Source: Epiperipatus broadwayi (taxonomy: Eukaryota > Animalia > Onychophora). Taken from it: 64,000 nt of DNA. A program made the position numbers and the translations under genes. Below, one piece after another: positions 2,761-53,300 of the stretch. The notes below the pieces were generated by a model, which searched no databases, was not told the DNA's origin, and saw only the letters and a program-made list of their open reading frames with translations. Position 1 is the first letter of the stretch. Every line of letters begins with the position of its first letter. Location: positions 16,678,001 to 16,742,000 of the forward strand of contig JAQFVV010000008.1 in assembly GCA_028023455.1 (NCBI GenBank), written 5' to 3'.

Positions 2761-3913
2761 AACAGAAAGAAAATTAAAAAAAAAAACGAGCTTGACTCCA
2801 ACATTGGGAAGCACAGCTAATTTCTTTTTCTTTACTCTCTATCGCTTTCTCCTTTCTTTCGTCTATCACTTTCTGTCAATAATGACTCTCCATCTCTTAT
2901 ACTTCCATTTCTGCTATAAATCTTCATCTAGATTTATTCTTATAATTTTTCAATCACTACGATTTCTATACCACGTTTGCCAACAAGACAGTCTAAGAAA
3001 ATTTTTTTATCTCACCTGATCAACGCTTATATACCCCCTCATTACATGGTGAATATTGAGGTCCTACCTCCAGACTATTGGTTTTACATTTTTAAGTAAT
3101 TGCTATTAACATTCCTTGCTAAGTGCTCATGTGTTTAAACAATACACATAGCTGAATTTATTTTTCATATCTTTTTTCCATTCATTTTAATCACAAAAAA
3201 AGTATTTTGTCTTAACGAAGACTTTTATCTTTGAATCTATTTAAGATTTCTCAAACCATTAATACATTTTAAATTCCAATCCCATATTTTTTTTAATTAC
3301 CGTCCCTCAGGTGTCAAGCCGAATGACCACCAATGCATTTGTACATTTTTTTTCTCTAAAACATAATACAATAAAAATAAAAAAGTCATTGACTTACCTG
3401 CAATAATTCAAACCAAACTTTAACAATATATAAAAATTAAAATGTATACGTGTTGAAAACTTCAAAATTATTTTTAAGTTTTCAAAAAAAAAAATATTCA
3501 ACATGCAAACAAACAAAAAAATACAACTTTGACAATTTAAATTAAAACACATGTTTACCTGTTGGATAAATTAAAATTACTTTTAAGTTTCGTAGTATAA
3601 ATTTATACCCCACCATATTTACATGTTTTAAAAATAACAATTTCTGACAAACAAAATTATAAAAAATCAAAAGTATATGCGAATGTACATTTATATAACA
3701 CGTATTATTATTATTTACACTTTTTAAAAAAATATATTTTGTGTGTAAGCGAAAGAGAAAATATATCTACACAGACCAATCCTTTTATTACAAGTTATGT
3801 ATATTTTTGTTTAGGCTGTAACTATGCTTGCAGCTTTGACTGTCATTTAAGACTTACTGGCACAATATTTATATATAAGATTTGCTATTATCCACAATTT
3901 TCAGCATACATAT

Positions 3914-6112
3914 TGTAACGATCCGGAGAAGGCGACTTACGTAAACTGCACTACAGGGCGCCATCTAGGCATTTGAACCTAGAAAAATTTATAAAGTAGG
4001 CAGATACGTAAGTCAAAAAAAAAAAAATTTTTTTTTTTTTTAAAATTTTGATTCCGGTCATTAGCCCATGTCACTAGCTCAGTGGAATGGCAGAGATTAA
4101 ATAATATCATATCTTATCTAATTAGATTTCAACATTAAAAAATAAATAAAATAAGCCACTGCCAGTAATTAGCATACAAACATTTTATTTATGCACATAT
4201 ATATAAGATTTAAAATTATTTTAGTATTAGTTTACATTTTACTATTTAACATTATTTTTTATTTTACCTTAGATTTTAATTTACATTTTATTACTATTAC
4301 ATTCTAATTTTACATTTTAATTAAGTTCGCACAGATAAATTTATGAAAGCTTGTTTATAATGTTGAATATAGATCGGTTACATAGATTTCATGGCCAAAA
4401 ACATTTCAAAGTAAACATAAACGATCAAAATACAAAATTATTGATTACTGACAATTGCGGAGGGAAATTTATACGTAACCCAATAGTATTCACCATAAGA
4501 TACTTGCATTGTCACCAATAACTTAAAAGACATCCGAATAAATACATTTTAGATACTCACCGTAAGGTATCATTATTTATCGAATGTCTATATATTTTGA
4601 TCAAATATGGAAACGCAAAACATAGTTAACCAATAAACAATCCATGCAAGCGTCTATAAACAACTTAAATTTAATGCATTTTTATTTAGGATCGAGTATG
4701 AATAGACCACATAAATTTGCTTTTGAAAATAAACATTCTATCCCTATTTAACCTTAGGCTAAAATTCGTAGTCAAACTGACATCAATTCATCTGATATAT
4801 CGATGTATTCAATGTAATAAAATACGGCAGCACAAAAGGTTAAGAGAAGAAATTGCCTCATATGAGATAGGAATATTACATCTATCTGCAAAGAAGAGCA
4901 ATAAAACAAAAAACTCCATAGAAAGGAACTGCGGTATCCGACTTATAATTCCTTCCATAGGCAAACGGAAGTGTGCGGCGTATGAAGCGATTCTGCCCGG
5001 AGCGAATCAATATTACATCTACTAATCACACCAATATATCCAATCCATTGACCCAATTTAACCACGAAACAAATAACCTAAGATTACCCTCCCCTAATAT
5101 AACTTTACAAATCTATACAGCCATTCACGCCCGACTTAAGTTGAACATTGATATATTTTAATTCATCGGAAAACAGAAATCATAAATAAACTTAAAGAAC
5201 AAAGTTAAATAAATGGAAATGATTTTAAATAAATAAATAACAAATACATCAAATAACATTATTAATGAAGAATTTAGTTTGGTCAGATAGGATTCTATTG
5301 CATTATTTACTAAAAAGTTTTAAAATTTAGAGTTCTTATTGTTTCAAGTGAATATAAAGTTCTTACAATTTTTAAAACGTCCAACTTTATCCGTTGCTTG
5401 CCATGAACGTAAATTCCCACGCCGTCCTAAAGAGGTTAATATTCTGAAGGCCGATTTATTTATCCATCCGGAGATTTTTGCTTTAACTAGTCCTCAATGT
5501 AGAAAACAATAGTTCATTTCTCCTTTCTTTAACAGCTGACAGAATTGACAGTGCGTCTGTCAATTCCATCACCTCCAACACTGTACTACTACATATAGTC
5601 ACATCGTAATAATCAATAATCAATCACTCCCTAATAATTTTCAACCATGTCCTTTTATATTCATTTGAAGGATTGCATTTACATTACGTCATTGATGCGA
5701 TGATCCTTTTCGTTGAGGTCCGATTTCCCAATGGATTTATTTCATTTGCTAAAAGTTTCTATTGTTTTCCTCTCTGACCGATGTTTTTACATTTAAATGC
5801 CCAAGGCTGGTTTACATTTAACTAATTAACAATCATTTCCATTTCTGATTAATTAACCTGTTTTCCAAATCAAAGATATATTTTTATCTCTAAATCTTTT
5901 TAAGTTTTTGTTTAATTTTACTTTTTCTTTAATAAAGTTTTATTTTAATAATTTTTCATTATCTGTGCGATTTAACATATACGAGTTTAAGATGATATTT
6001 AATTTCAATTTTTAATTCTTAAAGAAAATTTTTTAAATGCGAACTTTTTAATTTACTTTCATGTTTAATAAAATAAAAAAAAACAATGTAACGAACGTCT
6101 GTGCTCGTTACA
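3914..6112 (+). repeat. Left arm of element A, itself bounded by TGTAACGA...TCGTTACA (LTR-like unit)
   Basis: Perfect 8-bp inverted termini at 3914 and 6105-6112. Confidence 0.8.
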
Positions 6113-6863
6113 TATCAGTAAAGTTGCTTAAAAAAAAAAATGATCAAAAAAAAAAATATTTTACTTAGGGTTAGTAATTACGGTATACGATTAACAAAAT
6201 TTACAAAACATTTGGTTAGTATAAAGACTATATACAAAAAGAAAAGGAAAATGTTGACTATCGCCTACCTAAGGACCATTTACGTTTACACCCCTCCCCA
6301 CAAGAGTTCTATTTTATTTTATACATTTTATTTTTACACACGGCATGACAAGCAAATTTTATAAATTATTTATTTAAATAAGGTTGCATTGAGATAAATA
6401 TGTTTTAAGAAATAATGGGTTTAAACGTGTATATTTGCAGCACAATTATAAACACCACCAACTTATTTATGACTGATTAAAATGCTTAAATAGGATTACA
6501 CTGAAGTAAATTCCCAACAGTACTCATCGTAAGGTACCACATTTCGATCATAAACTTACGTGGCTGTGCGCGCCTATACACGTTAAAGCATAATATATAT
6601 CAACAAAAAAAAAAACATATTTATTGCAACCTTTTGACTTTTTTTTTTTTTTTTTTAACAAAAATTAGTTTTTAAAATTTTTTCACTTTCTTGTGTTTAA
6701 TATATATGCGCAATTTCTTTTACTGGCAGAGCTTTTATAAGATTTAAAGTATACGACTTATGTAAACAGATAAAATATTTCATTTTGACAAAATTTGCTC
6801 AGGGTATTTGTGGTTTATTAAAGATCGGCCCCAGATTGGGAAAGCCAGTTGTAATATGTTGCT

Positions 6864-7640
6864 ATAGATCGGTTACATAGATTTCAACGGTTAAACACAT
6901 TTCAAAGTAAACATAAACGATCAAAATACAAACTTATTGATTACTGACAATTGCGGAGGAAAATTTATACGTAACCCAATAGTATTCACCATAAGATACT
7001 TGCATTGTCACCAATAACTTAAAAGACATCCGAATAAATACATTTTTGATACTCACCGTAAGGTATCATTATTTATCGAATGTCTAATATATTTTGATCA
7101 AATATGGAAACGCAAAACATAGTTAACCAATAAACAATCCATGCAAGCGTCTATAAACAACTTAAATTTAATGCATTTCTATTTAGGGTCGAGTATGAAT
7201 AGACCACATAAATTTGCTTTTGAAAATAAACATTCTATCCCTATTTAACCTTAGGTTAAAATTCGTAGTCAAACTGGCATCAATTCATCTGATATATCGA
7301 TGTATTCAATGTAATAAAATACGGCAGCACAAAAAGTTAAGAGAAGAAATTGCTTCTCATGAGATAGGAATATTACATCTATCTGCAAAGAAGAGCAATA
7401 AAACAAAAAACTCCATAGAAAGGAACTGCGGTATCCGACTTATAATTCCTTCCATAGGCAAACGGAAGTGTGCGGCATATGAAGCGATTCTGCCCGTAGC
7501 GAATCAATATTACATCTACTAATCACACCAATATATCCAATCCATTGACCCAATTTAACCACGAAACAAATAACCTAAGATTACCCTCCCCTAATATAAC
7601 TTTACAAATCTATACAGCCATTCACGCCCGACTTAAGTTT
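6864..7640 (+). repeat. Third, partial direct copy of the A arm inside the central spacer
   Basis: Near-identical to about 4367-5145. It accounts for the duplicated 102-aa ORFs at 4717 and 7214. Confidence 0.9.
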
Positions 7641-7703
7641 AACATTTATATAATTATTTTAACGAAAAACAAAAATCATGTTTGTATGTTAAAAAAAAAA
7701 AAA

Positions 7704-9901
7704 AAAACGAGCACAGACGTTCGTTACATTGTTTTTTTTTATTTTATTAAACATGAAAGTAAATTAAAAAGTTCACATTTAAAAAATTTTCTTTAAGAAT
7801 TAAAAATTGAAATTAAATATCATCTTAAACTCGTATATGTTAAATCGCACAGATAATGAAAAATTATTAAAATAAAACTTTATTAAAGAAAAAGTAAAAT
7901 TAAACAAAAACTTAAAAAGATTTAGAGATAAAAATATATCTTTGATTTGGAAAACAGGTTAATTAATCAGAAATGGAAATGATTGTTAATTAGTTAAATG
8001 TAAACCAGCCTTGGGCATTTAAATGTAAAAACATCGGTCAGAGAGGAAAACAATAGAAACTTTTAGCAAATGAAATAAATCCATTGGGAAATCGGACCTC
8101 AACAAAAAGGATCATCGCATCGATGACGTAATGTAAATGCAATCCTTCAAATGAATATAAAAGGACATGGTTGAAAATTATTAGGGAGTGATTGATTATT
8201 GATTATTACGATGTGACTATATGTAGTAGTACGGAGTTGGAGGTGATGGAATTGACAGACGCACTGTCAATTCTGTCAGCTGTTAAAGAAAGGAGAAATG
8301 AACTATCGTTTTCTACATTGAGGACTAGTTAAAGCAAAAATCTCCGGATGGATAAATAAATCGGCCTTCAGAATATTAACCTCTTTAGGACGGCGTGGGA
8401 ATTTACGTTCATGGCAAGCAACGGATAAAGTTGGACGTTTTAAAAATCGTAAGAACTTTATATTCACTTGAAACAATAAGAACTCTAAATTTTAAAACTT
8501 TTTAGTAAATAATGCAATAGAATCCTATCTGACCAAACTAAATTCTTCATTAATAATGTTATTTGATGTATTTGTTATTTATTTATTTAAAATCATTTCC
8601 ATTTATTTAACTTTGTTCTTTAAGTTTATTTATGATTTCTGTTTTCCGATGAATTAAAATATATCAATGTTAAACTTAAGTCGGGCGTGAATGGCTGTAT
8701 AGATTTGTAAAGTTATATTAGGGGAGGGTAATCTTAGGTTATTTGTTTCGTGGTTAAATTGGGTCAATGGATTGGATATATTGGTGTGATTAGTAGATGT
8801 AATATTGATTCGCTACGGGCAGAATCGCTTCATACGCCGCACACTTCCGTTTGCCTATGGAAGGAATTATAAGTCGGATACCGCAGTTCCTTTCTATGGA
8901 GTTTTTTGTTTTATTGCTCTTCTTTGCAGATAGATGTAATATTCCTATCTCATAAGAGGCAATTTCTTCTCTTAACCTTTTGTGCTGCCGTATTTTATTA
9001 CATTGAATACATCGATATATCAGATGAATTGATGCCAGTTTGACGCTCTTCCGATCTGCCTAAGGTTAAATAGGGATAGAATGTTTATTTTCAAAAGCAA
9101 ATTTATGTGGTCTATTCATACTCGACCCTAAATAAAAATGCATTAAATTTAAGTTGTTTATAGACGCTTGCATGGATTGTTTATTGGTTAACTATGTTTT
9201 GCGTTTCCATATTTGATCAAAATATATAGACATTCGATAAATAATGATACCTTACGGTGAGTATCTAAAATGTATTTATTCGGATGTCTTTTAAGTTATT
9301 GGTGACAATGCAAGTATCTTATGGTGAATACTATTGGGTTACGTATAAATTTCCCTCCGCAATTGTCAGTAATCAATAATTTTGTATTTTGATCGTTTAT
9401 GTTTACTTTGAAATGTTTTTGACCGTGAAATCTATGTAACCGATCTATATTCAACATTATAAACAAGCTTTCATAAATTTATCTGTGCGAACTTAATTAA
9501 AATGTAAAATTAGAATATAATAGTAATTAAATGTAAATTAAAATCTAAGGTAAAATAAAAAATAATGTTAAATAGTAAAATGTAAACTAATACTAAAATA
9601 ATTTTAAATCTTATATATATGTGCATAAATAAAATGTTTGTATGCTAATTACTGGCAGTGGCTTATTTTATTTATTTTTTTAATGTTGAAATCTAATTAG
9701 ATAAGATATGATATTATTTAATCTCTGCTATTCCACTGAGCTAGTGACATGGGCTAATGACCGGAATCAAAATTTAAAAAAAAAAATTTTTTTTTTTTTT
9801 GACTTATGTATCTGCCTACTTTATAAATTTTTCTAGGTTCAAATGCCTAGATGGCGCCCTGTAGTGCAGTTTACGTAAGTCGCCTTCTCCGGATCATTAC
9901 A
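7704..9901 (-). repeat. Right (inverted) arm of element A
   Basis: Reverse complement of 3914-6110. Its inner TGTAAC end is interrupted by a poly-A run at about 7690-7707. Confidence 0.9.
9042..9057 (+). other. Illumina TruSeq adapter remnant (assembly or polishing artifact)
   Basis: GACGCTCTTCCGATCT equals the 3' end of the TruSeq universal adapter. It replaces TACGAATTTTA, the sequence expected from the left arm. Confidence 0.85.
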
Positions 9902-10540
9902 ATATTAAACCAATTCAATGTGAACATGTCTTAACTTGAAATTTGTGCTCATATAACTTTTGGATGTGATTAGATGTGATCAGATTAAAAAGATAGACTT
10001 GATATAGAAGGTGAGTAAGGTAGATTAAGTGTGGGTTGGAAAATACATAAGTTATGAAGATGAATATCTAACCTTCAAATATGACAATGATTATACTAGT
10101 ATGATGATAATATTTGGTTTATCCTATTCCCAATTGAATGCCATTAATTTCATGCAGAATTTAGAAGATGACATCAAATATTTTAAATATATTTTGTTGT
10201 GATTGGTTATATAACATTCATAACAAATTACCATTTTTAACTATGTTATAAATTAGAAATGTACTTCTTTTTTGGTTTCCTAACTCTCTATTCATATACT
10301 CTTGGTTTTTTTAAGCAGGAATCTTCTATCTGCTATCATACTAAAGGCACAATATATGTATACTGTCCAAATCGTCAGATCGAAAAAACTCTTTCTATTA
10401 CTTTTATCTATGATTTTTATTTAGAAAAATATGAAAGAAAAATATAAATAAATCAATAAGCTTTAATATATAATAAGTTAATCATGAATTTATTATATGA
10501 TTTCCAAACATATTTCAATAACAGGCTATTGTAATTAATT

Positions 10541-29577: not shown

Positions 29578-31249
29578 TTGGAGAAAAAGACATGGATAGC
29601 AAGTGAGATTGCAGATAAGAATGGAAGGATGTTAACTGATAGTAATGATATATTAAAAAGATGGGAAGAATATCTTCAATGTCTGTTTAGTAGAGGAAAT
29701 CATGTAATTAATTATGAATTTGAAAATGAAGATGTTGAAATAGATGATAGAGGTATGGACATATTGCTGGATGAACAATCGCACAAGTGAAGAATAGTAA
29801 AGCTGTTGGATTTGATGCAAATACCTATAGAATTTTTGAGAGAAATGGGAGAATTTACTATGAAGGAAATAGTTGGACTTTGCAATTTGATATATAATAG
29901 TGGAGTTTGGCCTGAAGATTTTTTAAGAACTAGAATGATTCCAATTGCTAAAAAGAATAAAGCTGCTAAATGTGAAGAGTATAGAACAATAAGTTTGTTG
30001 TCTCATACTTCTAAAGTTTTATTGAGGATTTTAACTCAAAGGATTTATGGGAAGGTAGATTATTATATTGGTGAAGAACAGTTTGGTTTTTGGAAAGGGA
30101 AAAGCACAAGAGATGCTATTGGTATTGTTAGGACAATTGTGAAAAGATATATGGAAAGAGATAAAGGAATTGGTATATGTTCTGTGGATTTAGAAAAGGC
30201 ATTTGATAGAGTAGTCTGGAATAAAATGATGTTCATCTTAAAAGATAAAGGAGTATTTTGGAAAGAAAAATGATTGATTTGGATTATGTATAATGGTCAA
30301 AGGATAAGAATTAGATTTGTGAATAATGTGACTGATGAAGTGAATATAGAAAGTGGAGTTAGGCAAGGGTGTAGTGTGTCGCCTGTTCTGTTTAATATTT
30401 ATTTAGAAGATATGCTAAATAATTATTTGGGACTGTAGAGGAGCAGATGTTGGAGGGAGAGTAATAAAGTATTTAAGATTTGCAGATGACATGGCTCTTA
30501 TTGCTGAAGAGGAAAAGGGTCTTTAGAATATGTTGAATAAATTGGAAGGATGTATGGCATATGGAATGAAGATTAATATTGAAAAGACTATGTGTTTATG
30601 GATAGGGAGAGATGCAAAAAGACTGCAAATTGGAATCTGTGATGACATGGTTCAACAGATGAAGGGATTTAGATATTTGAGTAGTTGTTTGAGTGAGGGT
30701 GGAAGAAGTCAAGATGAAGTTAAAAGAATAGCATTGGCAAAGGAGACATTTGTAAAGAGAAAGAATATAATTTGTGGACCTTTGGAAAGCGGAATGAAGA
30801 AATTAATTATATGTTATGTGTGGAGTATATTAATGTATGGTTGTGAGACATGGACATTGAGTAATAGAGTTAAGAAACAATTGGAAGCTTTTGAGATGTG
30901 GACATGAAGGAAAATGGAAAAAATCAGTTGGATGAGTAAAATAACAAATGAAGAAGTTTTGAAAAGAGTAAATGAGGAAAGAAGAATATCAGAGAGAGAA
31001 AGAGAAACTGTATTGGATATATATTGAGAAAAGATTATAGTTTAATGAAAGATATTTTGGAGGGAATGGTGAGTGGAAATAAAAAGGATGGAAGAGATTG
31101 ACATTATTGGATGATATAAGAGATGGGAAGACTTATGTGGAATTGAAGAAATGGGCAAGGAAGTGAATAGAATGGAAGAATGGATGAATTGATGTTGTGA
31201 CTAATCTCTGGACCTGTCTATTGGACAGAATACTATTGATTGATTGACT
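29578..31249 (+). mobile_element. 5'-truncated RTE-clade LINE (RT to 3' tail), pseudogenised
   Basis: CEEYRTISLLSHTSKVL, QFGF.KGKSTRDAI, VDLEKAFDRV, GVRQGCSVSPVLFNIY, FADD and YGCETWTL are present. It ends with a 3' stem-loop CTGTC-TATTG-GACAG and an (ATTG)n tail. Confidence 0.95.
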
Positions 31250-31716: not shown

Positions 31717-32599
31717 GTTGAGTTAGAAGACAAAATAACAATTAGTAATGAAGATGGACAAAAGCTAGCTGTAGCTAATGAGATGTCATTTGATTCTTGC
31801 TCTATAGAAATTATGAATAGTTCTGATGTTAATCAAATTATTACTGACAACTATGATAGTATACCTATTGACAAATATTACTGGAATTTCTTAATTAATA
31901 AAAATTCTAATGCTCTGATTCAGTTGTTTATTGAAATGTGTTTACAAATTGATAATGCAAGTGATAATGTATTACAACTTAAGTTTAAAAATGTAAGTGA
32001 TCGGCAGATGAAAGACAAATTTGAAACTTTTTTTACTCAGAATGCTTCCAAGTTTTTTGAAATAAATGAATCCAAAATTGAAAATGATAATTACTCAGAA
32101 ACACAGATTTCTAATAATCACATATATAATACTACTTATGACAAATTAGAGAATGATTCACACATTGTTTCTAATACTTCACAAAATATTAATTCTTCTA
32201 AAACAGTATTTACGTATTACGAAGATATCAAAGTAACTATTTATCAAGGAAATATTACCAAAGAAGTTGTTGACATCATTGTTAATGCAGCTAATACTAT
32301 GCTGGATAATTGCTGTGGAGTAGCTAAAGCTATTTTACATGCAAGTCAAGATGACAGTATTCAAATAAATTGTGATAAATACATTATAAAAAATGGAAAG
32401 AAAGGATTAAATGTTGGTTCTATTTATTCTTCAGTATCTGGTAAACTTAACTGCAAAAATATTTATCATGCTGTGATTCCAAGATGGAATCTATATGGGG
32501 TTCAGAGTATCAATATATTAGGAGATCTACTGTACAATTGTTTTTTGAAGGCAGATAAATCTAACATGAATTCCATTGCTTTACCTCTTATAAGTTCAG
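31717..32599 (+). CDS. Internal exon encoding a macro domain (PARP14/PARP9/PARP15-like protein)
   Basis: Polypyrimidine-tag acceptor in frame with the 31783 ORF. Macro motifs: VTIYQGNIT, DIIVNAAN, GVAKAI, IYHAV, SIALPLISSG. GT donor after the SSG glycine at 32600. Flanking exons were not identified. Confidence 0.9.
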
Positions 32600-32659
32600 G
32601 TATTATTAAATTTATTATTAAATATATTAAATTTATTAAGTGCCAGCAGATAATATAAT

Positions 32660-46761: not shown

Positions 46762-48125
46762 ATATATATGTCAATCTGTTATTTTTTATAAAAAAAAAAA
46801 ACGAATTTAAGTTTGTTAATATTATTAAGTGATATTACGAATGGTGATTGTTTAACAAAGAATACAAAAGATTTTTAATCATTTTATCAACAAATAAATA
46901 TAAAAACTAGATTGTTTTTTTTTATATTTAAATTGAGAAATAATTTTTTAGCAAAATAAAATTTTAGTTTGGTATTCATGGCAAAATAACTTTTTTCAAA
47001 AAATAATTATTTTACAGCTGTAAATGGGAAACAGTTTAATTACAATTATTGCACTAAAGGAGCATTTGAAATGACTAAAATTTAATTTCTATATTATTTA
47101 AGAGATGGGGGGGGGTATATAAAATAGCTTTTTATTAATATTTCAAAATATCATATCTTTTTTATTCTTTATGCATTGATTGTATGTGTACATATGTAAT
47201 ATTTTAAAAAAATACACCTTTTATGATCACTTTTTACATACATTAATTTTTATTTATTTATTGTCATTTTTTAACAGTTTTGATCAGAGGTATAATATTC
47301 AAATATATATGAGTACATAATTAATATATTTTATATTTTAATGGACAAGATTGTAACGGTCATATTTGTACATTCACACAACAAAATCTAGAATCCTAGC
47401 AAATTATACCAAGGCTGATTTAGAGGAGGGGTTGAGACCTCGAATCAGATCGCACCTCAGCTCCTCCACCAACACTCCATGACTTACTACCCTATGAATG
47501 ACATATATGAGGCTACACTCTGAGTTTCTTAATTCACGTGCCAGTAGTAGCAAAGGATGGAACAAGAGACTCAGGAAAATTAACTAACATTTTAAATCAA
47601 CACACACCTATATGGCTGGCTAGACAATGCATACATCAATAGTTAATGCTAGTATTAAGAAATTTAACTAAGATTTGGGATGGATTACGAATGACATGCA
47701 ACACTGATTATAATTTAATATATTTTAATTAATAAATATAGATTAAGTAAATATGAGTGCACTGAATGACACACGCAGGTGTAACAATGATGAGCAAGTT
47801 TGAGAACAGAATCTCATCTAATGCACTATAGTTCAAAACAGTTTATTACAATTTTAATAATCTACGGTCTATTTATGCCTTAATTTTACCATGCCCTATC
47901 TATTATGTTTGCGACGGTTAAGTTGGTGCAAGAAGGATGATTTATCACCATAACATTTAATAAATGGTCATTTAATAACAATGAGCTGCAATAGGCGCTC
48001 TATGCAGATTATATACGTACCAAACCAAATTACATATTCAGATCAATGCTGAAATATTATGTTACATTATGGAGGGTTGAACTGGAGCTTTGTAGTATGA
48101 CTTCAGATATTATGACATTATATAT

Positions 48126-49771
48126 TGTAACCGTTTATTCCGGCGCAAACACATATATATGTGATACACGTTTATTATGTATTTTAAACTTAAGTTTTGC
48201 TTTTTTATTTAACAGAAATTTATAATATGAACACATATATGTGTGGTTGGTTTTGCGATGCCCTCTAATTACTCGCCCAGCATATTTATGAGCATCAATA
48301 ATGACCTCGCGCCAATCTTACCTACGAATAAATAAGAATTATGCTGGGAGAGGATGAGTATCTATTTCTGGTGGTTAGAGCTTGTATCTCTGGCTAGCTC
48401 ACTCAGGGGTAGTAGTCGGTGACCGTGGGAAAGAGGTGGAGGGAACATATAAAAATGCACATGTAGCGCATGAACTATTCATTTGCTTTCCTACTTTTTG
48501 CTTTTTAATATTATTTTAAGAAATTAACACTAACACACACAATTAAATTTATAATACTAATTAATATTTATTAATATAAAACAAATAAAACAAAACCCAT
48601 AAAATCCCAGAATTGGATATTGGTTTGTGCCCGAACAATTAAATAACCTCCATGTAAATACACTCGCACAAGTTTATAAATGCCATTCACAAAAATACAG
48701 ATCATAGCTTGAAAACAATTTCAATCAGGCATTGTCTATTAAGGCGTATACAGGGTATTATTTCAACATTTTCTTCATTTACTTTAACCCTTTTACGCAT
48801 TATTTAATAGGACGTGCTTTCATTCAAAATAGTTATTATCACTTACGAAAATGTTTGGTTTATCTCACCCAGGTGTAGATTATTAGCTGTACGATTAAAA
48901 TATTTCTTTCTTTGGTCAAATTCCATAAGGCAATCAATGGCATCCAGTGAATGCTGTTCTTTTCATGGTTTTAAGAAGGGCTTCGCTCCTACATTTACAG
49001 TGATGGTAGTCTCTCCACAGGATGGATGGCATAGCCTGGCCCGTTCTGCTCTTCTACCCCAACCTGTTCATGATTTTTCGATTATAAACTTTTTTTCTTT
49101 TTACCAACTTTTTCTTACGATCCTGCTCATGGCAGTCACAACTAATATAAGTCCTTCTCAATTCAGCTTTCTCGAATCTCCTTAATCATGCTATTGTTCT
49201 GCTTTAATTGAACCACGTGGTTTGCAAAACAAAAATCTTTTCAATACTTTTCTTTTCTTTGTTTCTCTTATCTAAGCTTAGGAATTTCCAATTTACCTTG
49301 CAATCTACACTCGACCGTTCATTGTCTATTACTTTTAACATTTTATTTTATTAATTAAAATGTCTTTGTCTCAAGATAGTGATCTGCAACTGTTCGGGTC
49401 CTTTCTTTGCAATTAATTAATTTTTTTTATAATTTGTGACATTCTTCCTTTAATCGACCATCTTGGAATATTTCTTTTTAAATTAAAATAACTTTTATTC
49501 CTTTTTACGAAATTATTACATTTACTCACTCATGCAGCAATATAAACACGCGTATAAATAAATATCAGAGCACAAACCATATAATCCCCCATCCCTCTTA
49601 TATTTCAACCTGTTTTTATTTAATTACTTAAATATATATGTATGGGCTCGCATACAAGGTCACAATGAAAAAGAACAATTTACTTAATATTATATTTGAT
49701 TTAATTAGCTACGTATGCTCGGTAGTATTACCCTCTGACTTAGAACAGGGTTTGAACTCAGGCCTGTTATA
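48126..49771. mobile_element. Solo-LTR-like element C nested in the left arm of B
   Basis: TGTAACC...TGTTATA termini with ATAT on both sides. Removing it restores colinearity with the right arm of B (cattat-atgt-attact). A TATA-like CATATAAAAA lies near 48450. Confidence 0.75.
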
Positions 49772-50172
49772 ATATATTACTAGAGAGGTGTACGTCTCAA
49801 ATTTGTAGTTACTCAGGAAATTCAGTACCAAGTACTCGGTTCAAGTGGACCATATGACTTGCTGTGAATAAATTGAACATATAGTTCGGTGATCAGAGCA
49901 CTATCTGGACCCTCCTGTTCCAGTTCTAAAGAAGAGCTGTCTGAACTAAGTAGATGGATGGCCATTAAAACTAGAAGCTCATTCATTTAAGAAACATACA
50001 GCAAAGCGTAAATGCACATATGTGCTTCCCAAAAATATATTCGCTTGCTAAATATAATATTAATTAATAACTTAAGATACGCAAAATTCTATAGTTTTCT
50101 GCAAAACTACCGCATGCCAGTTCATAATTAGCATTCTTAAAACATGCTAAAGGGATACTTTAAGTAATCTTA

Positions 50173-50364
50173 TTTATTAACCAATCTTCACAGTTTATAA
50201 TATAACTCAAAAGAGGGCTAAAGCATATCTGAGATGTAAGCAATACATATAATATGCTTTCTAACTCATTTATTAACCAATCTTCACAGTTTATAATATA
50301 ACTCAAAAGAGGGCTAAAGCATATCTGAGATGTAAGCAATACATATAATATGCTTTCTAACTCA
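50173..50364. repeat. Exact 96-bp tandem duplication in the left arm of B
   Basis: 50173-50268 equals 50269-50364. The right arm has a single copy. Confidence 0.95.
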
Positions 50365-53300
50365 TTCTTGCACTTATTAACTAATTACTTTATTAATTGG
50401 AAAACCTAATTCTAGTGACAATAATAATAATAAGCTAAACATAATAGCTTAACCAATATATTTAGGTTTTCAGAGTGGAGATTTATGTGTGTGTGTGTTA
50501 AAGAGCAAAATTACTGAATTATGAGAGAGCCTCTACTCATCTCCCCCTCAAATTTTATTCATAGAATCAATCTCTGTTCTGAATTGGGCATAGCATAAAT
50601 TATAAAATTAACATATATAAAACAAATAAGAAGGCATGACCGCAGATTAGCAAGTAACAGAATAATAACTGAATAAGTTATTATTAACAAGCATTTAGAG
50701 TTTTAGATTTTAATTTAATAGATAGGCAAGTTTACAGATATTATTTTAGCAGAATTTTAAATTATAATTTACAGATGTAAACCAGTTTTAATTATTAGAA
50801 TATATTACAGTTTAGAATTTTATGCACATTATAGATTAGTAGCTAGCTTAGCTTTTAGATAAATTTTTAGAATTATTTTTTTAAAGAGCTCTGCAGGAAA
50901 AATTTGTTACCGTATCTTTGCTGAGGCTTTTCTGTAGCTGATCACCATCATTCTTGGCTGGGCTGATCCATTCCTGATGTCTTCTTAGCAGATTAACTCT
51001 TCTCCCCATTCTTCCACCTCTATAGACCGATCTGTTGAAAGGAGAGCCTGCAAACGATATGGCCTTAGCTGCCAAACTCCATTTTCCAATCAGTCATAGT
51101 GACTGACAGCAATTACTATATCAAATTCTAAATAAGTGAACCCTTATTTCTTAAATTCTAAAACTCTAAATGCTTGTTAATAATAACTTATTCAGTTATT
51201 ATTTTGTTACTTGCTAATCCATGGTCATGCCTTCTTATTTGTTTTATGTTTATTTTATAATTTATGCTATGCCCAATTCAGAGCGGAGATTGATTCTATG
51301 AATAAAGTTTGAGGGGAAGATAATTAGAAGCTCTCTCATAATTCAGTAATTTCGCTCTTTAACACACACATATAAATCTCCGCTCGAAAACCCATAATAT
51401 ATTGGTTAATCTATTATGTTTAGCTTATTATTATTATTGTCATTAGAATTAGGTTTGCAAGTCAAAGTAATTAGTTAATAAATGCAAGAATGAGTTAGAA
51501 AGCATATTATACGTATTGCATAAGTCCCAGATATGCTTTAGCCCTCTTTTGAGTTATATTATAAACTGTGCATATTGGTTAATAAATTAGATTACTTAAA
51601 GTATCCCTTGAGCATGTTTTAAGAATGCTAATTATGAACTAGTATATGGTAGTTTCATGAAATGAAACTATCGAATTTTGCATATCTTAGGTTATTAGTT
51701 AATATTATATTTAATGTGGTGAATGTGTCTTTAGGAAGCACATACATGCATTTACGCCTTGCTTTATGTTTCTTATGGGAATGGGATTCTAGTTTTAATG
51801 TCCATCCCATCTACTTAGTCCGGACAGCTATTTAGAACTGGAACACGAGGGTCCAGATGGTTTATAAGCTGCTCTGATCACTGAACTATATGTTCAATTT
51901 ATTCACAGCAAGTCAAATGGTTCACGGGAACTGAGACTTGGTACTAAATCCCCTGAGATGCACACCTCTTTAGTAATACATATAATGCCGTAGTATCTGA
52001 AGTCATACTACAGAGCTCCAGTTCATCCCTCCATAATGCAATATAATATTTCAGCATTGATTTGAATATGTAATCTGGTTTGGTACGTATATAATCTGCA
52101 TAGAGAGCTTATTGCAGCTCATTAAGTGTGTATTAAATGATCTTTAATTAAATGTTATGGTGATAAATCATCATTCTTGCACTGATTTAACCATCGCAAA
52201 CCTAATAGGTAGGGCATGATAAAATTAAGGCGTAAATAGACCATAGATTATTAAAATTGTAATAAACTCTTTTGAACTATAGTGCATTAGATGAGATTCT
52301 ATTTTTAAACTTGCTCATCATTGTTACACCTGTGTGTGTCATTCAATGCACCTATATTTATTTAATCTATATTTATTAATTAAAATATATTAAATTATAA
52401 TCACTGTTGCGTATCATTCGTAATCCATCCCAAATCTTAGTTAAGTTTCTTAATACTAGTGTTAACTATTGATGTATGCATTGTCTAGCCAGCTATAGAG
52501 ATGTGTGTTCATTTAAAGTATTAGTAATTTAGTTAAATTTCCTGAGTCTCTTGCTCCATCCTTTGCTACTGCTGGCATGTGAACTAAAACTCTGAGTATA
52601 GACTCATATATGTCATTCATAGGGTAGTAAATCTTGGAGCATTGGTGAAGGAGCTGAGGTGTGATCAGATTCAAGGTCTCAATCCCTCATCTAGATCAGC
52701 CTTGGTATAATTTGCCAAAACTCTGTATTTTGTTGTGTGAATGTACATATATGACTATTACAAGATTGTATAATCGGGGTTACCCCCATGCTCTTAGTTT
52801 AAATCCCTACCTAGGCTTCCTAGTCTCAACCACCTAATTAACATCCTTGATATCACCCAGATTCCTTTTTTTCACAGCATGATCTAGTTCAGGGCACAAA
52901 CAAACTCAGGGTTCTTTCAACAACTTGGTTCAGTGCACCTTAGCCCTTCCTTTATACAGATTGGTATTACATTATAACTTGTAATTCTGCTCAAACATAC
53001 TATCAAATCAATTTTATTACTAGACTGACAGATTACATAGGATTTTCACTAGCCTGGGTTTAAAGCTCAGACTTCTCAAAGCAATATTCAACAAATACTT
53101 AAGTCTAGATTATTAGCTTACGGTTCTATGGTTTTAGAAATATACATTTAATTATTCATGATCATAATAGTTTATTATAATATTTAATGGAATGAATAGA
53201 TGGCATACAAGTTAATTTATAAATTAACGATTTCACTGGCCCTTACATTATTATGGATTGAAGTACTGGCAGTTTATGTATTGATATGTGCCTAAATTAC

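Follow-up and report, generated by a model that had tools for sequence, protein, structure and literature searches.

In a 64,000-nucleotide stretch of the genome of the onychophoran Epiperipatus broadwayi (contig JAQFVV010000008.1, positions 16,678,001 to 16,742,000 of the forward strand; referred to here as the window, with positions counted from its first letter), we investigated a 6-kb foldback at 3914-9901 whose two arms are long terminal repeats (LTRs). We found that this foldback is a singleton and a dead end, put together from the internal region and three LTR copies of one abundant retrotransposon with direct LTRs. Its layout is that of two partial copies of this family placed head to head, minus sense on the left and plus sense on the right. 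As its most likely origin we tentatively propose one faulty event of reverse transcription and integration, in which two partial complementary DNAs (cDNAs) would have been joined head to head. A first-pass annotation, made from the letters alone, had described the structure as a mobile foldback element built from inverted LTR-like arms.

The inverted arms were recovered both by an inverted-repeat search of the window, which paired 3910-6109 with 7706-9905 in blocks of 1339, 623, 134 and 130 nt at 93-99%, and by BLAST of 3914-6112 against the window, which returned 9901-7706 at 98.46% identity. This identity rose to 99.1% when a 13-nt Illumina adapter at 9045-9057 in the right arm was excluded. 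Arms of this kind cannot be due to chance, and the 2.2-kb inverted arms (3914-6112 versus 7706-9901) of the first-pass annotation were thus confirmed by both searches. The outer termini read ATAT/TGTAACGATCC... on the left and ...GGATCATTACA/ATAT on the right, and the left arm is limited by TGTAACGA...TCGTTACA. The TGT..ACA ends, the ATAT on both sides and the LTR-like bounds of the left arm could therefore all be read in the sequence as they had been described. The 8 terminal nucleotides of the LTR form a perfect inverted repeat. The arms consist of unique LTR sequence, and no internal tandem array was seen in the repeat search of the window. A lack of coding capacity was also borne out, since no open reading frame (ORF) in the foldback exceeds 102 amino acids, and the longest one gave no Pfam match.

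Within the 1.6-kb spacer between the arms lie an internal region of 737 bp, a third LTR that is only partial, an LTR fragment of 13 nt and a run of 17 A (A17); their coordinates are given in Table 1. The third LTR has a private deletion of positions 7 to about 410 (in the LTR numbering first used), and at the inversion junction it overlaps the 13-nt fragment by an ATG microhomology of 3 nt. The right arm is 3 nt short at its inner end, where the initial TGT of the U3 (unique 3′) start is missing. The third LTR copy, the 737-bp internal region, the Illumina adapter and this 3-nt loss had all been missed in the first-pass annotation. It had also taken the lack of ATAT at the inner flanks of the arms as an argument against two insertions. 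These flanks are TATCAG... on the left and the A17 run on the right, and neither is ATAT; however, both are family sequence (internal region on one side, poly(A) and LTR fragment on the other), so that this argument does not hold.

The orientation of the family was then read from its primer-binding site and its poly(A) site. An intact primer site for tRNA-Lys1,2 adjoins the ...GGATCGTTACA end of the LTR in one locus, L033, and in 19 LTR-end junctions. The order in L033 is U5 (unique 5′) end, A, TGGTGCCCAACGTGGGGC, about 600 bp of internal sequence, ...TTTACTGATA and LTR start, and the spacers of the 19 junctions, which join two U5 ends, read A plus TGGCGCCCAACGTGGGG... and then their own reverse complement. 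The word TGGCGCCCAACGTGGGG is the primer-binding site for tRNA-Lys1,2 (PMC8775094). Since this primer site adjoins it, we read ...CTCCGGATCGTTACA as the U5 end of the LTR. Independent evidence for the orientation came from A runs following AATAAA and 13 further nucleotides at four loci, including the one in this window. Here the run at 7691-7707 is preceded by ...ATGTTTGTATGTT, a word that lies 13 nt past AATAAA in full LTRs. The position of the A-run junction probably corresponds to the poly(A) site of the LTR, which would make U5 its last 255 nt, and we take the A run itself for the poly(A) tail of a transcript of the family. The sense strand of the family is thus the reverse of the obvious one, and because of this both outer ends of the foldback are U5 ends. 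Moreover, the upstream context of each arm is that of a terminal LTR. The motif GGGAAAG before the LTR was considered as a polypurine tract and rejected, since the primer-site and poly(A) evidence give the opposite orientation. In the same polypurine-tract test, the conserved ...TTTACTGATA preceding the U3 start was not purine-rich, and the right arm was found to be preceded by the A run. We also observed, at positions 2232-2380 of L033, a miniature foldback of the U5 end, in which 30 nt of the LTR end are followed by about 100 nt of the same end inverted, then by the intact tRNA-Lys primer site and a different internal region of roughly 600 bp. L033 is a related non-autonomous subfamily.

We searched the 5.6-Gb assembly for the family, all candidate counts being those of a first look. 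The LTR arm gave 7155 candidates, of which 40 were scored, all of them full-length at 93-97% identity, and the 737-bp internal region gave 3555. Of the 29 other loci fetched, 25 have the internal region between two LTRs in direct orientation. The canonical element thus consists of 737 bp enclosed by two LTRs, measures about 5.1 kb and is non-coding; family arrays with a 2.95-kb period are also present. Perfect 4-bp duplications were found at 17 of 18 solo LTRs. The duplicated sequence was ATAT in 14 of the 18, mostly within (AT)n, with ACCC, CTAT and ATAC as the others, and ATAT inside (AT)n is thus a strongly preferred target of the family. Because of this preference, ATAT on both sides of the foldback is near the default and has little bearing on whether there were one or two insertions; we put the likelihood ratio of the matching flanks at only about 1.5. 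The earlier description of the arms as LTRs with integrase-type ends and 4-bp duplications agrees with the solo LTRs of the family, which show the same. Taken together, the termini, the duplication length of 4 bp and the primer site for tRNA-Lys, the only features on which the superfamily is assigned, point to an ordinary non-autonomous Ty3/Gypsy-like LTR retrotransposon. The observed/expected ratio of CpG was 1.19 in the LTR (3914-6112) versus 0.46 in the whole window, and the family looks young relative to the CpG decay of this genome. One of the differences between the arms is itself a change of CpG to TpG in the terminal nucleotides (TGTAACGA to TGTAATGA). At 9-495, on its minus strand, the window also holds an old and diverged LTR fragment of this family, with 70-84% identity to LTR positions 33-385 and 767-901.

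We compared the three LTR copies of the foldback with one another and with other copies of the family. The left and right arms differ by 19 evenly spread substitutions in 2196 nt, and their remaining differences are the adapter, a homopolymer length and the 3 terminal nucleotides. Among 30 copies, at least 12 derived states are common to the two arms only and absent from the 28 others, and one 36-nt signature occurs in the whole genome only in these two arms. The paired LTRs of 21 intact elements were 98.2-100% identical over about 800 nt, with one pair at 96.6%. The identity of the left and right arms is inside this range, whereas the third copy, at 96.4% to the left arm and 96.0% to the right arm, is outside it. 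The third copy is 98.3% identical to a family copy elsewhere in the genome, and at LTR positions 1245-1292 (same numbering as above) it belongs to another subtype than the arms; in every intact element with both LTRs spanning this segment, the two were of the same subtype. On these comparisons the arms are sister copies, as alike as the LTR pair of one retrotransposition, and the third copy is not. The sister status of the arms fits insertion in one event without proving it. The claim that the structure was inserted as one unit stands to this extent, and the ATAT flanks, being near the default for the family, leave it unproven.

None of the internal junctions of the foldback was found a second time. 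The 421-nt centre had no further full-length match in the assembly, the word across the inversion junction occurred once with up to 2 mismatches allowed, and the deletion junction of the third copy was also single genome-wide. Because every internal junction is unique in the genome, the unit was never copied, and it is a singleton that does not move. Ten loci matching 7480-7703 were considered as sharing the junction and rejected, as they are ordinary LTR copies whose A-rich continuation aligns by chance. The genome-wide search with arm and spacer that had been suggested for finding further foldback copies returned no second copy of this unit, and direct-LTR and solo forms were found instead. 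A family of foldback elements is therefore not what the genome contains, the canonical form being the direct-LTR one and the three internal junctions occurring once each.

The assembly itself was also examined. A 695-nt contig from two runs of one sample (X1 and X2) spans 9876-10400 with 0 differences and no branch, and the junction between the right arm and the host DNA is thus real, with no empty allele in that sample. No other copy of the right flank of the foldback exists in the genome; on the left, the flanking sequence (3414-3868) is a repeat with 661 candidates that ends about 45 bp before the insertion. The adapter in the right arm is an exact match to the Illumina core AGATCGGAAGAGC on the minus strand, with 0.02 such matches expected by chance, and it extends to 16 nt if the GTC common with the LTR is counted. 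It replaces 11 family nucleotides that are kept in the left arm, in the third copy and in 28 of 28 other copies. Since conserved family nucleotides have been replaced, short reads must have changed the assembly in this part, and the adapter is likely contamination from short-read polishing or patching.

We then asked which other abnormal LTR junctions occur in the genome, using a pattern of two LTR ends at most 30 nt apart. This pattern gave 41 loci, versus 1 for a control pattern, and these comprised 23 U5-to-U5, 9 U3-to-U3 and 9 head-to-tail junctions. The primer-site palindrome runs through 19 of the 23 U5-to-U5 junctions, whose spacers are near-palindromes of 10-27 nt that combine the primer-binding site for tRNA-Lys1,2 with its own reverse complement. 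In the approximately 45 nt seen per locus, they look like inverted LTR dimers formed by two plus-strand strong-stop DNAs pairing at the self-complementary primer site. All 9 U3-to-U3 junctions have (AT)n or a bare TATA between the LTRs and show, left intact, the topology of the window unit; two insertions into a single AT tract would be expected to give this. Head-to-tail LTR pairs across (AT)n were also found in this census. In other head-to-tail junctions (C98:72557 and 74774, C6259:3812751, C12395:7186519 and C12606:406738), only ATTTA, ACTTA or ACTGTA lies between the U5 end and the U3 start, and it looks as if the whole internal region had been lost between ACTG, the start of the primer site, and ACTGATA, the end of the internal region.

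The junction in which the R (repeat) end is followed by an A run of 12-17 nt and the U3 start of a full LTR was very rare: it occurred at 7678-7718 of the window and at only three other places, two of which are duplicates of one locus. It looks like a jump of the reverse transcriptase from the end of an LTR template to the poly(A) tail of another RNA. In one of these places (C6837), the LTR has the poly(A) junction on its U3 side and the primer-site palindrome on its U5 side, and LTR plus primer site make up exactly a plus-strand strong-stop unit (U3-R-U5-primer-binding site). In L011, the poly(A) junction unites two LTRs that are not sisters (94.9% identical), as a jump onto the tail of a foreign RNA would do. 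A rare 40-nt signature of the arms has 10 copies in the genome, 6 of which lie in three inverted pairs, namely the one in the window and those at C147 and C6547. A pattern for a spacer of 91-151 nt between two U3 starts, aimed at C6547, gave no match. Inverted pairs of like LTRs thus recur in this genome, and the other pairs differ from the window unit in architecture.

The reverse-transcription steps of the origin that we favor are all inferred, against the observed anatomy, family, sisterhood of the arms and uniqueness of the junctions. Within one particle, a minus-strand DNA would have read past the primer site toward the 5′ end of a different, co-packaged RNA, yielding the left arm, the internal region and the third copy. 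The second strand would have copied the strong-stop LTR, itself a copy of the template of the left arm; on reaching the U3 start it would have switched to a poly(A) tail, where it stalled 13 nt later. The two 3′ ends may then have paired by ATG/CAT and primed on each other, giving a duplex with a U5 end on each side, which an integrase would have inserted once at ATAT. Such a single event would account, as our leading but still tentative explanation, for the sister arms, the rare poly(A) junction close to the inversion junction, the foreign third copy and the matching flanks. In its favor, only 13 nt separate the inversion junction, with its microhomology of 3 nt, from the poly(A) run, and abnormal inverted dimers of the LTR are common in this genome.

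Several observations weigh against this origin. The private substitutions of the arms are uneven, with 15 in the left and 4 in the right arm (binomial p about 0.02), an imbalance that suits a pair of the same age poorly, unless short-read polishing may have drawn the right arm toward the family consensus; such polishing is hinted at because the adapter sits inside this arm. The central junction, with its A17 homopolymer, has no read support, and no empty site was found among the paralogues of the flanks, so that a single target site is unproven. Since the third copy is not a sister of the left arm, two co-packaged RNAs would be needed, or else an RNA 5′ end or break at the breakpoint of the third copy. 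Finally, neither an autonomous partner nor an integrase was identified, no search having been aimed at it. A broader possibility, which we hold with less confidence, is that the unit is an integrated dimeric cDNA from one virus-like particle, inserted through its two U5 ends by a pathway that recurs in this genome. On that reading, strong-stop or partial cDNAs would give rise to inverted-LTR insertions that include the primer-site dimers, the poly(A)/U3 junctions and the C147 and C6547 pairs.

An origin by two or more separate insertions would start from opposite-orientation insertions into the same AT-rich target, one of an ordinary element in minus sense and one of the rare poly(A)-LTR variant in plus sense, followed by a deletion leaving the ATG microhomology and by gene conversion from arm to arm. 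We consider this main rival unlikely. The genome does contain what such an origin would begin with, namely nine loci where (AT)n or a bare TATA separates two facing U3 starts, head-to-tail pairs with (AT)n in between, and ATAT as the preferred target; moreover, an inverted Rover pair with an ATATAT junction provides a published precedent (PMC5932611), and the difference between the third copy and the left arm is explained naturally. However, about five events are required, and the right-hand partner must be a variant present at only 3 other places among thousands of copies. The deletion must also end 13 nt from the poly(A) run of this variant, and the conversion must span the full 2.2 kb, with evenly spread differences and no unconverted patch, and yet spare the third copy. 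That the inverted arrangement, or part of it, is an assembly artefact, caused by chimeric joining or patching within so highly repeated an LTR, seems improbable to us. It would explain the adapter within the right arm and the lack of reads across the A17 central junction, in an LTR that is present in thousands of copies. Nevertheless, the junction of the right arm with the unique flank was confirmed in contigs of two runs, and the 19 evenly spread differences and the private common states of the arms indicate two real copies. The inversion junction, moreover, offers no overlap homology for a misjoin by the assembler, and chimeric foldback reads would have given a simple palindrome, which the structure is not.

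The first-pass annotation had favored a non-autonomous foldback transposon using the same LTR end twice, mobilized in trans by a Gypsy- or Ginger-type integrase and intermediate between LTR elements and Ginger transposons. The outer ends are indeed identical and of the integrase type, with ATAT flanks, and the perfect 8-nt terminal inverted repeat of the LTR implies that either end should serve as substrate. Further inverted LTR pairs exist in the genome, and the terminal inverted repeats (TIRs) of Ginger have been proposed to come from two opposite LTRs (Bao et al., PMC2836005). All this stands against a unit with no second copy, whose centre, inversion junction and third-copy deletion junction occur once each, in a genome where the other inverted pairs are built differently and the amplified canonical form carries direct LTRs. 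The unit has no transposase, and its interior is a patchwork of LTR pieces with junctions of the repair or template-switch type. For this unit the model is very improbable and close to refuted. The probability left over by the four origins considered so far goes to something else.

Other readings were rejected outright. One LTR could have been inverted in place through the 8-nt inverted repeat at its termini, but this does not fit, since the right arm keeps the rare junction of R end and A run in its own orientation, as at C329, C7985 and C6837. Replication fold-back copying of the left arm is ruled out because the right flank beyond ATAT is not the reverse complement of the left flank, and also because the inner neighbor of the right arm differs from that of the left. 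A Penelope or retrozyme reading was rejected for lack of a hammerhead and a tRNA-like gene, and since the duplications are of a fixed 4 bp. The Rfam scan gave no match at the gathering score of any family (the sole, chance-level match was to mir-192, E 0.47), and the search of the stretch for tRNA-like genes found none.

Compared with known systems, the family resembles LARD- and TRIM-like non-autonomous Ty3/Gypsy elements in its direct 2.2-kb LTRs, short non-coding interior, TGT..ACA ends and 4-bp duplications, as well as in its relic of a tRNA-Lys primer site, its abundant solo LTRs and its thousands of copies. The window unit differs from these elements in having sister LTRs that are inverted, with both U5 ends toward the host. 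Inverted tandems of transposable elements are known to arise from double insertion at one target (McGurk and Barbash 2018, PMC5932611). They likewise present an inverted pair of LTR elements at a palindromic AT target; however, in the centre of the window unit the place of target sequence is taken by a poly(A) junction, a fragment of 13 nt and an LTR piece of a foreign subtype, and the arms of the unit are sisters. The primer-site-joined dimers found elsewhere in this genome, whose best reading is that by-products of faulty reverse transcription were integrated, are also inverted LTR pairs with the same termini, but they join U5 to U5 with U3 outward. The window unit is turned the other way, with its U3 ends inside and its U5 ends outside, and its centre is complex. 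In L1 twin priming and in head-to-head insertions of the Penelope type the outcome is the same, namely two 5′-truncated inverted copies with intact 3′ ends outward and a microhomology junction; their enzymology is target-primed reverse transcription, in contrast to the integrase-type 4-bp duplications found here. The closest analogues would thus be inverted double insertions and, by outcome, L1 twin priming.

Ginger1 and Ginger2/Tdd have TGTNR-type termini and a 4-bp duplication, and Ginger2 prefers the AT-rich target RTATAY (PMC2836005). The window unit is similar in the type of its termini, in the 4-bp duplication and in its AT-rich target. Ginger elements, however, have TIRs of 40-270 bp, code for a transposase resembling an integrase and form families (Bao, Kapitonov and Jurka 2010, PMC2836005), whereas the arms of the window unit measure 2196-2199 nt, 8-50 times the length of Ginger TIRs, and the unit exists as one copy, with a retrotransposon-derived interior and neither a transposase ORF nor a Pfam match. 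The proposed Ginger link, or intermediate, is thus not supported. Classical Foldback (FB) elements have arms of tandem subrepeats, and no such array is present in the arms of the window unit. DIRS elements combine inverted repeats with an internal complementary region and make no duplication, whereas this family makes 4-bp duplications.

Table 1. Features of the foldback (window positions) and of related LTR junctions elsewhere in the genome (handle:position)
Feature	Position	Strand	Remarks
ATAT, left of unit	3910-3913		Half of a target-site duplication, or merely the preferred target of the family
Left arm, full 2199-nt LTR	3914-6112	-	U5 end at 3914, U3 start at 6112; by position the 3′ LTR of the minus-sense element
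Canonical 737-bp non-coding internal region	6113-6849	-	Same block adjoins the LTR in thousands of copies
Degenerate tRNA-Lys-type primer-binding site	6826-6849	-	End of internal region; homology to intact sites elsewhere
Third copy, partial LTR oriented as left arm	6850-7680	-	By position the 5′ LTR remnant of the same element; breaks at CATG
13-nt LTR fragment oriented as right arm	7678-7690	+	R end, directly before poly(A) site; inversion junction
A run	7691-7705	+	17 A (7691-7707) including 2 belonging to the LTR start; abuts U3 start of right arm
Right arm, 2196-nt LTR	7706-9901	+	U3 start at 7706, U5 end at 9901
Predicted poly(A) signal AATAAA	9628-9633	+	Cleavage predicted near 9646; U5 the last 255 nt
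ATAT, right of unit	9902-9905		Read from flank sequence
U5-U5 palindrome junctions	C272:342831, C463:139229, C496:24616, C1234:18528, C6227:4841214, C6246:2951974, C6267:2840325, C6320:9727, C6646:244189, C6837:91124, C11795:1851, C12393:6811187, C12416:7325784, C12468:1910566, C13060:237024		
U5-U5 palindrome junctions, shorter	C37:1743130, C6289:3065000, C12419:7461264, C12432:5337631		Four loci
Poly(A)/U3 junctions	C329:3477-3519, C7985:11515-11556, C6837:88920-88959		C329 and C7985 are duplicates of one locus
Further inverted pairs of the LTR	C147:2103435-2107739; C6547:about 370281-374805		Both arms carry the rare 40-nt signature

Elsewhere in the window, a second, unrelated long inverted repeat lies at 47345-52769, with arms of about 1.6 kb at 84-93% complementarity and a 437-nt centre. 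Its left arm is broken by about 1.7 kb (48124-49834), and a 96-nt tandem duplication was found at 50169-50360. Two coding fragments are unlinked to the LTR family: an ORF fragment at 29806-30273 with a reverse-transcriptase domain (RVT_1, E 6.6e-12), and an ORF of 291 amino acids at 31783-32658 with a Macro domain (E 4.3e-17).

Today the locus, of little importance in itself, is a dead, rearranged repeat that does nothing as a transposon, and it flags adapter contamination within an assembled repeat. As a specimen it is clean, combining inverted sister LTRs, a poly(A)-U3 fusion, an inversion junction with microhomology and, on the outside, two U5 ends whose flanks match. Seen alongside the dimers joined at the primer site, it suggests that the family often integrates malformed inverted cDNA products. 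If confirmed, it would be a record, in a natural genome, of an integrase inserting DNA with the same LTR end twice. Should the dimeric-cDNA pathway be true, inverted ends competent for integrase would be natural raw material for Ginger-like TIR transposons, although this copy never moved again. If transcribed across, the foldback would be expected to yield a hairpin RNA of 2.2 kb, and long hairpin-forming loci of this kind could, if confirmed, feed small-RNA silencing of the family.

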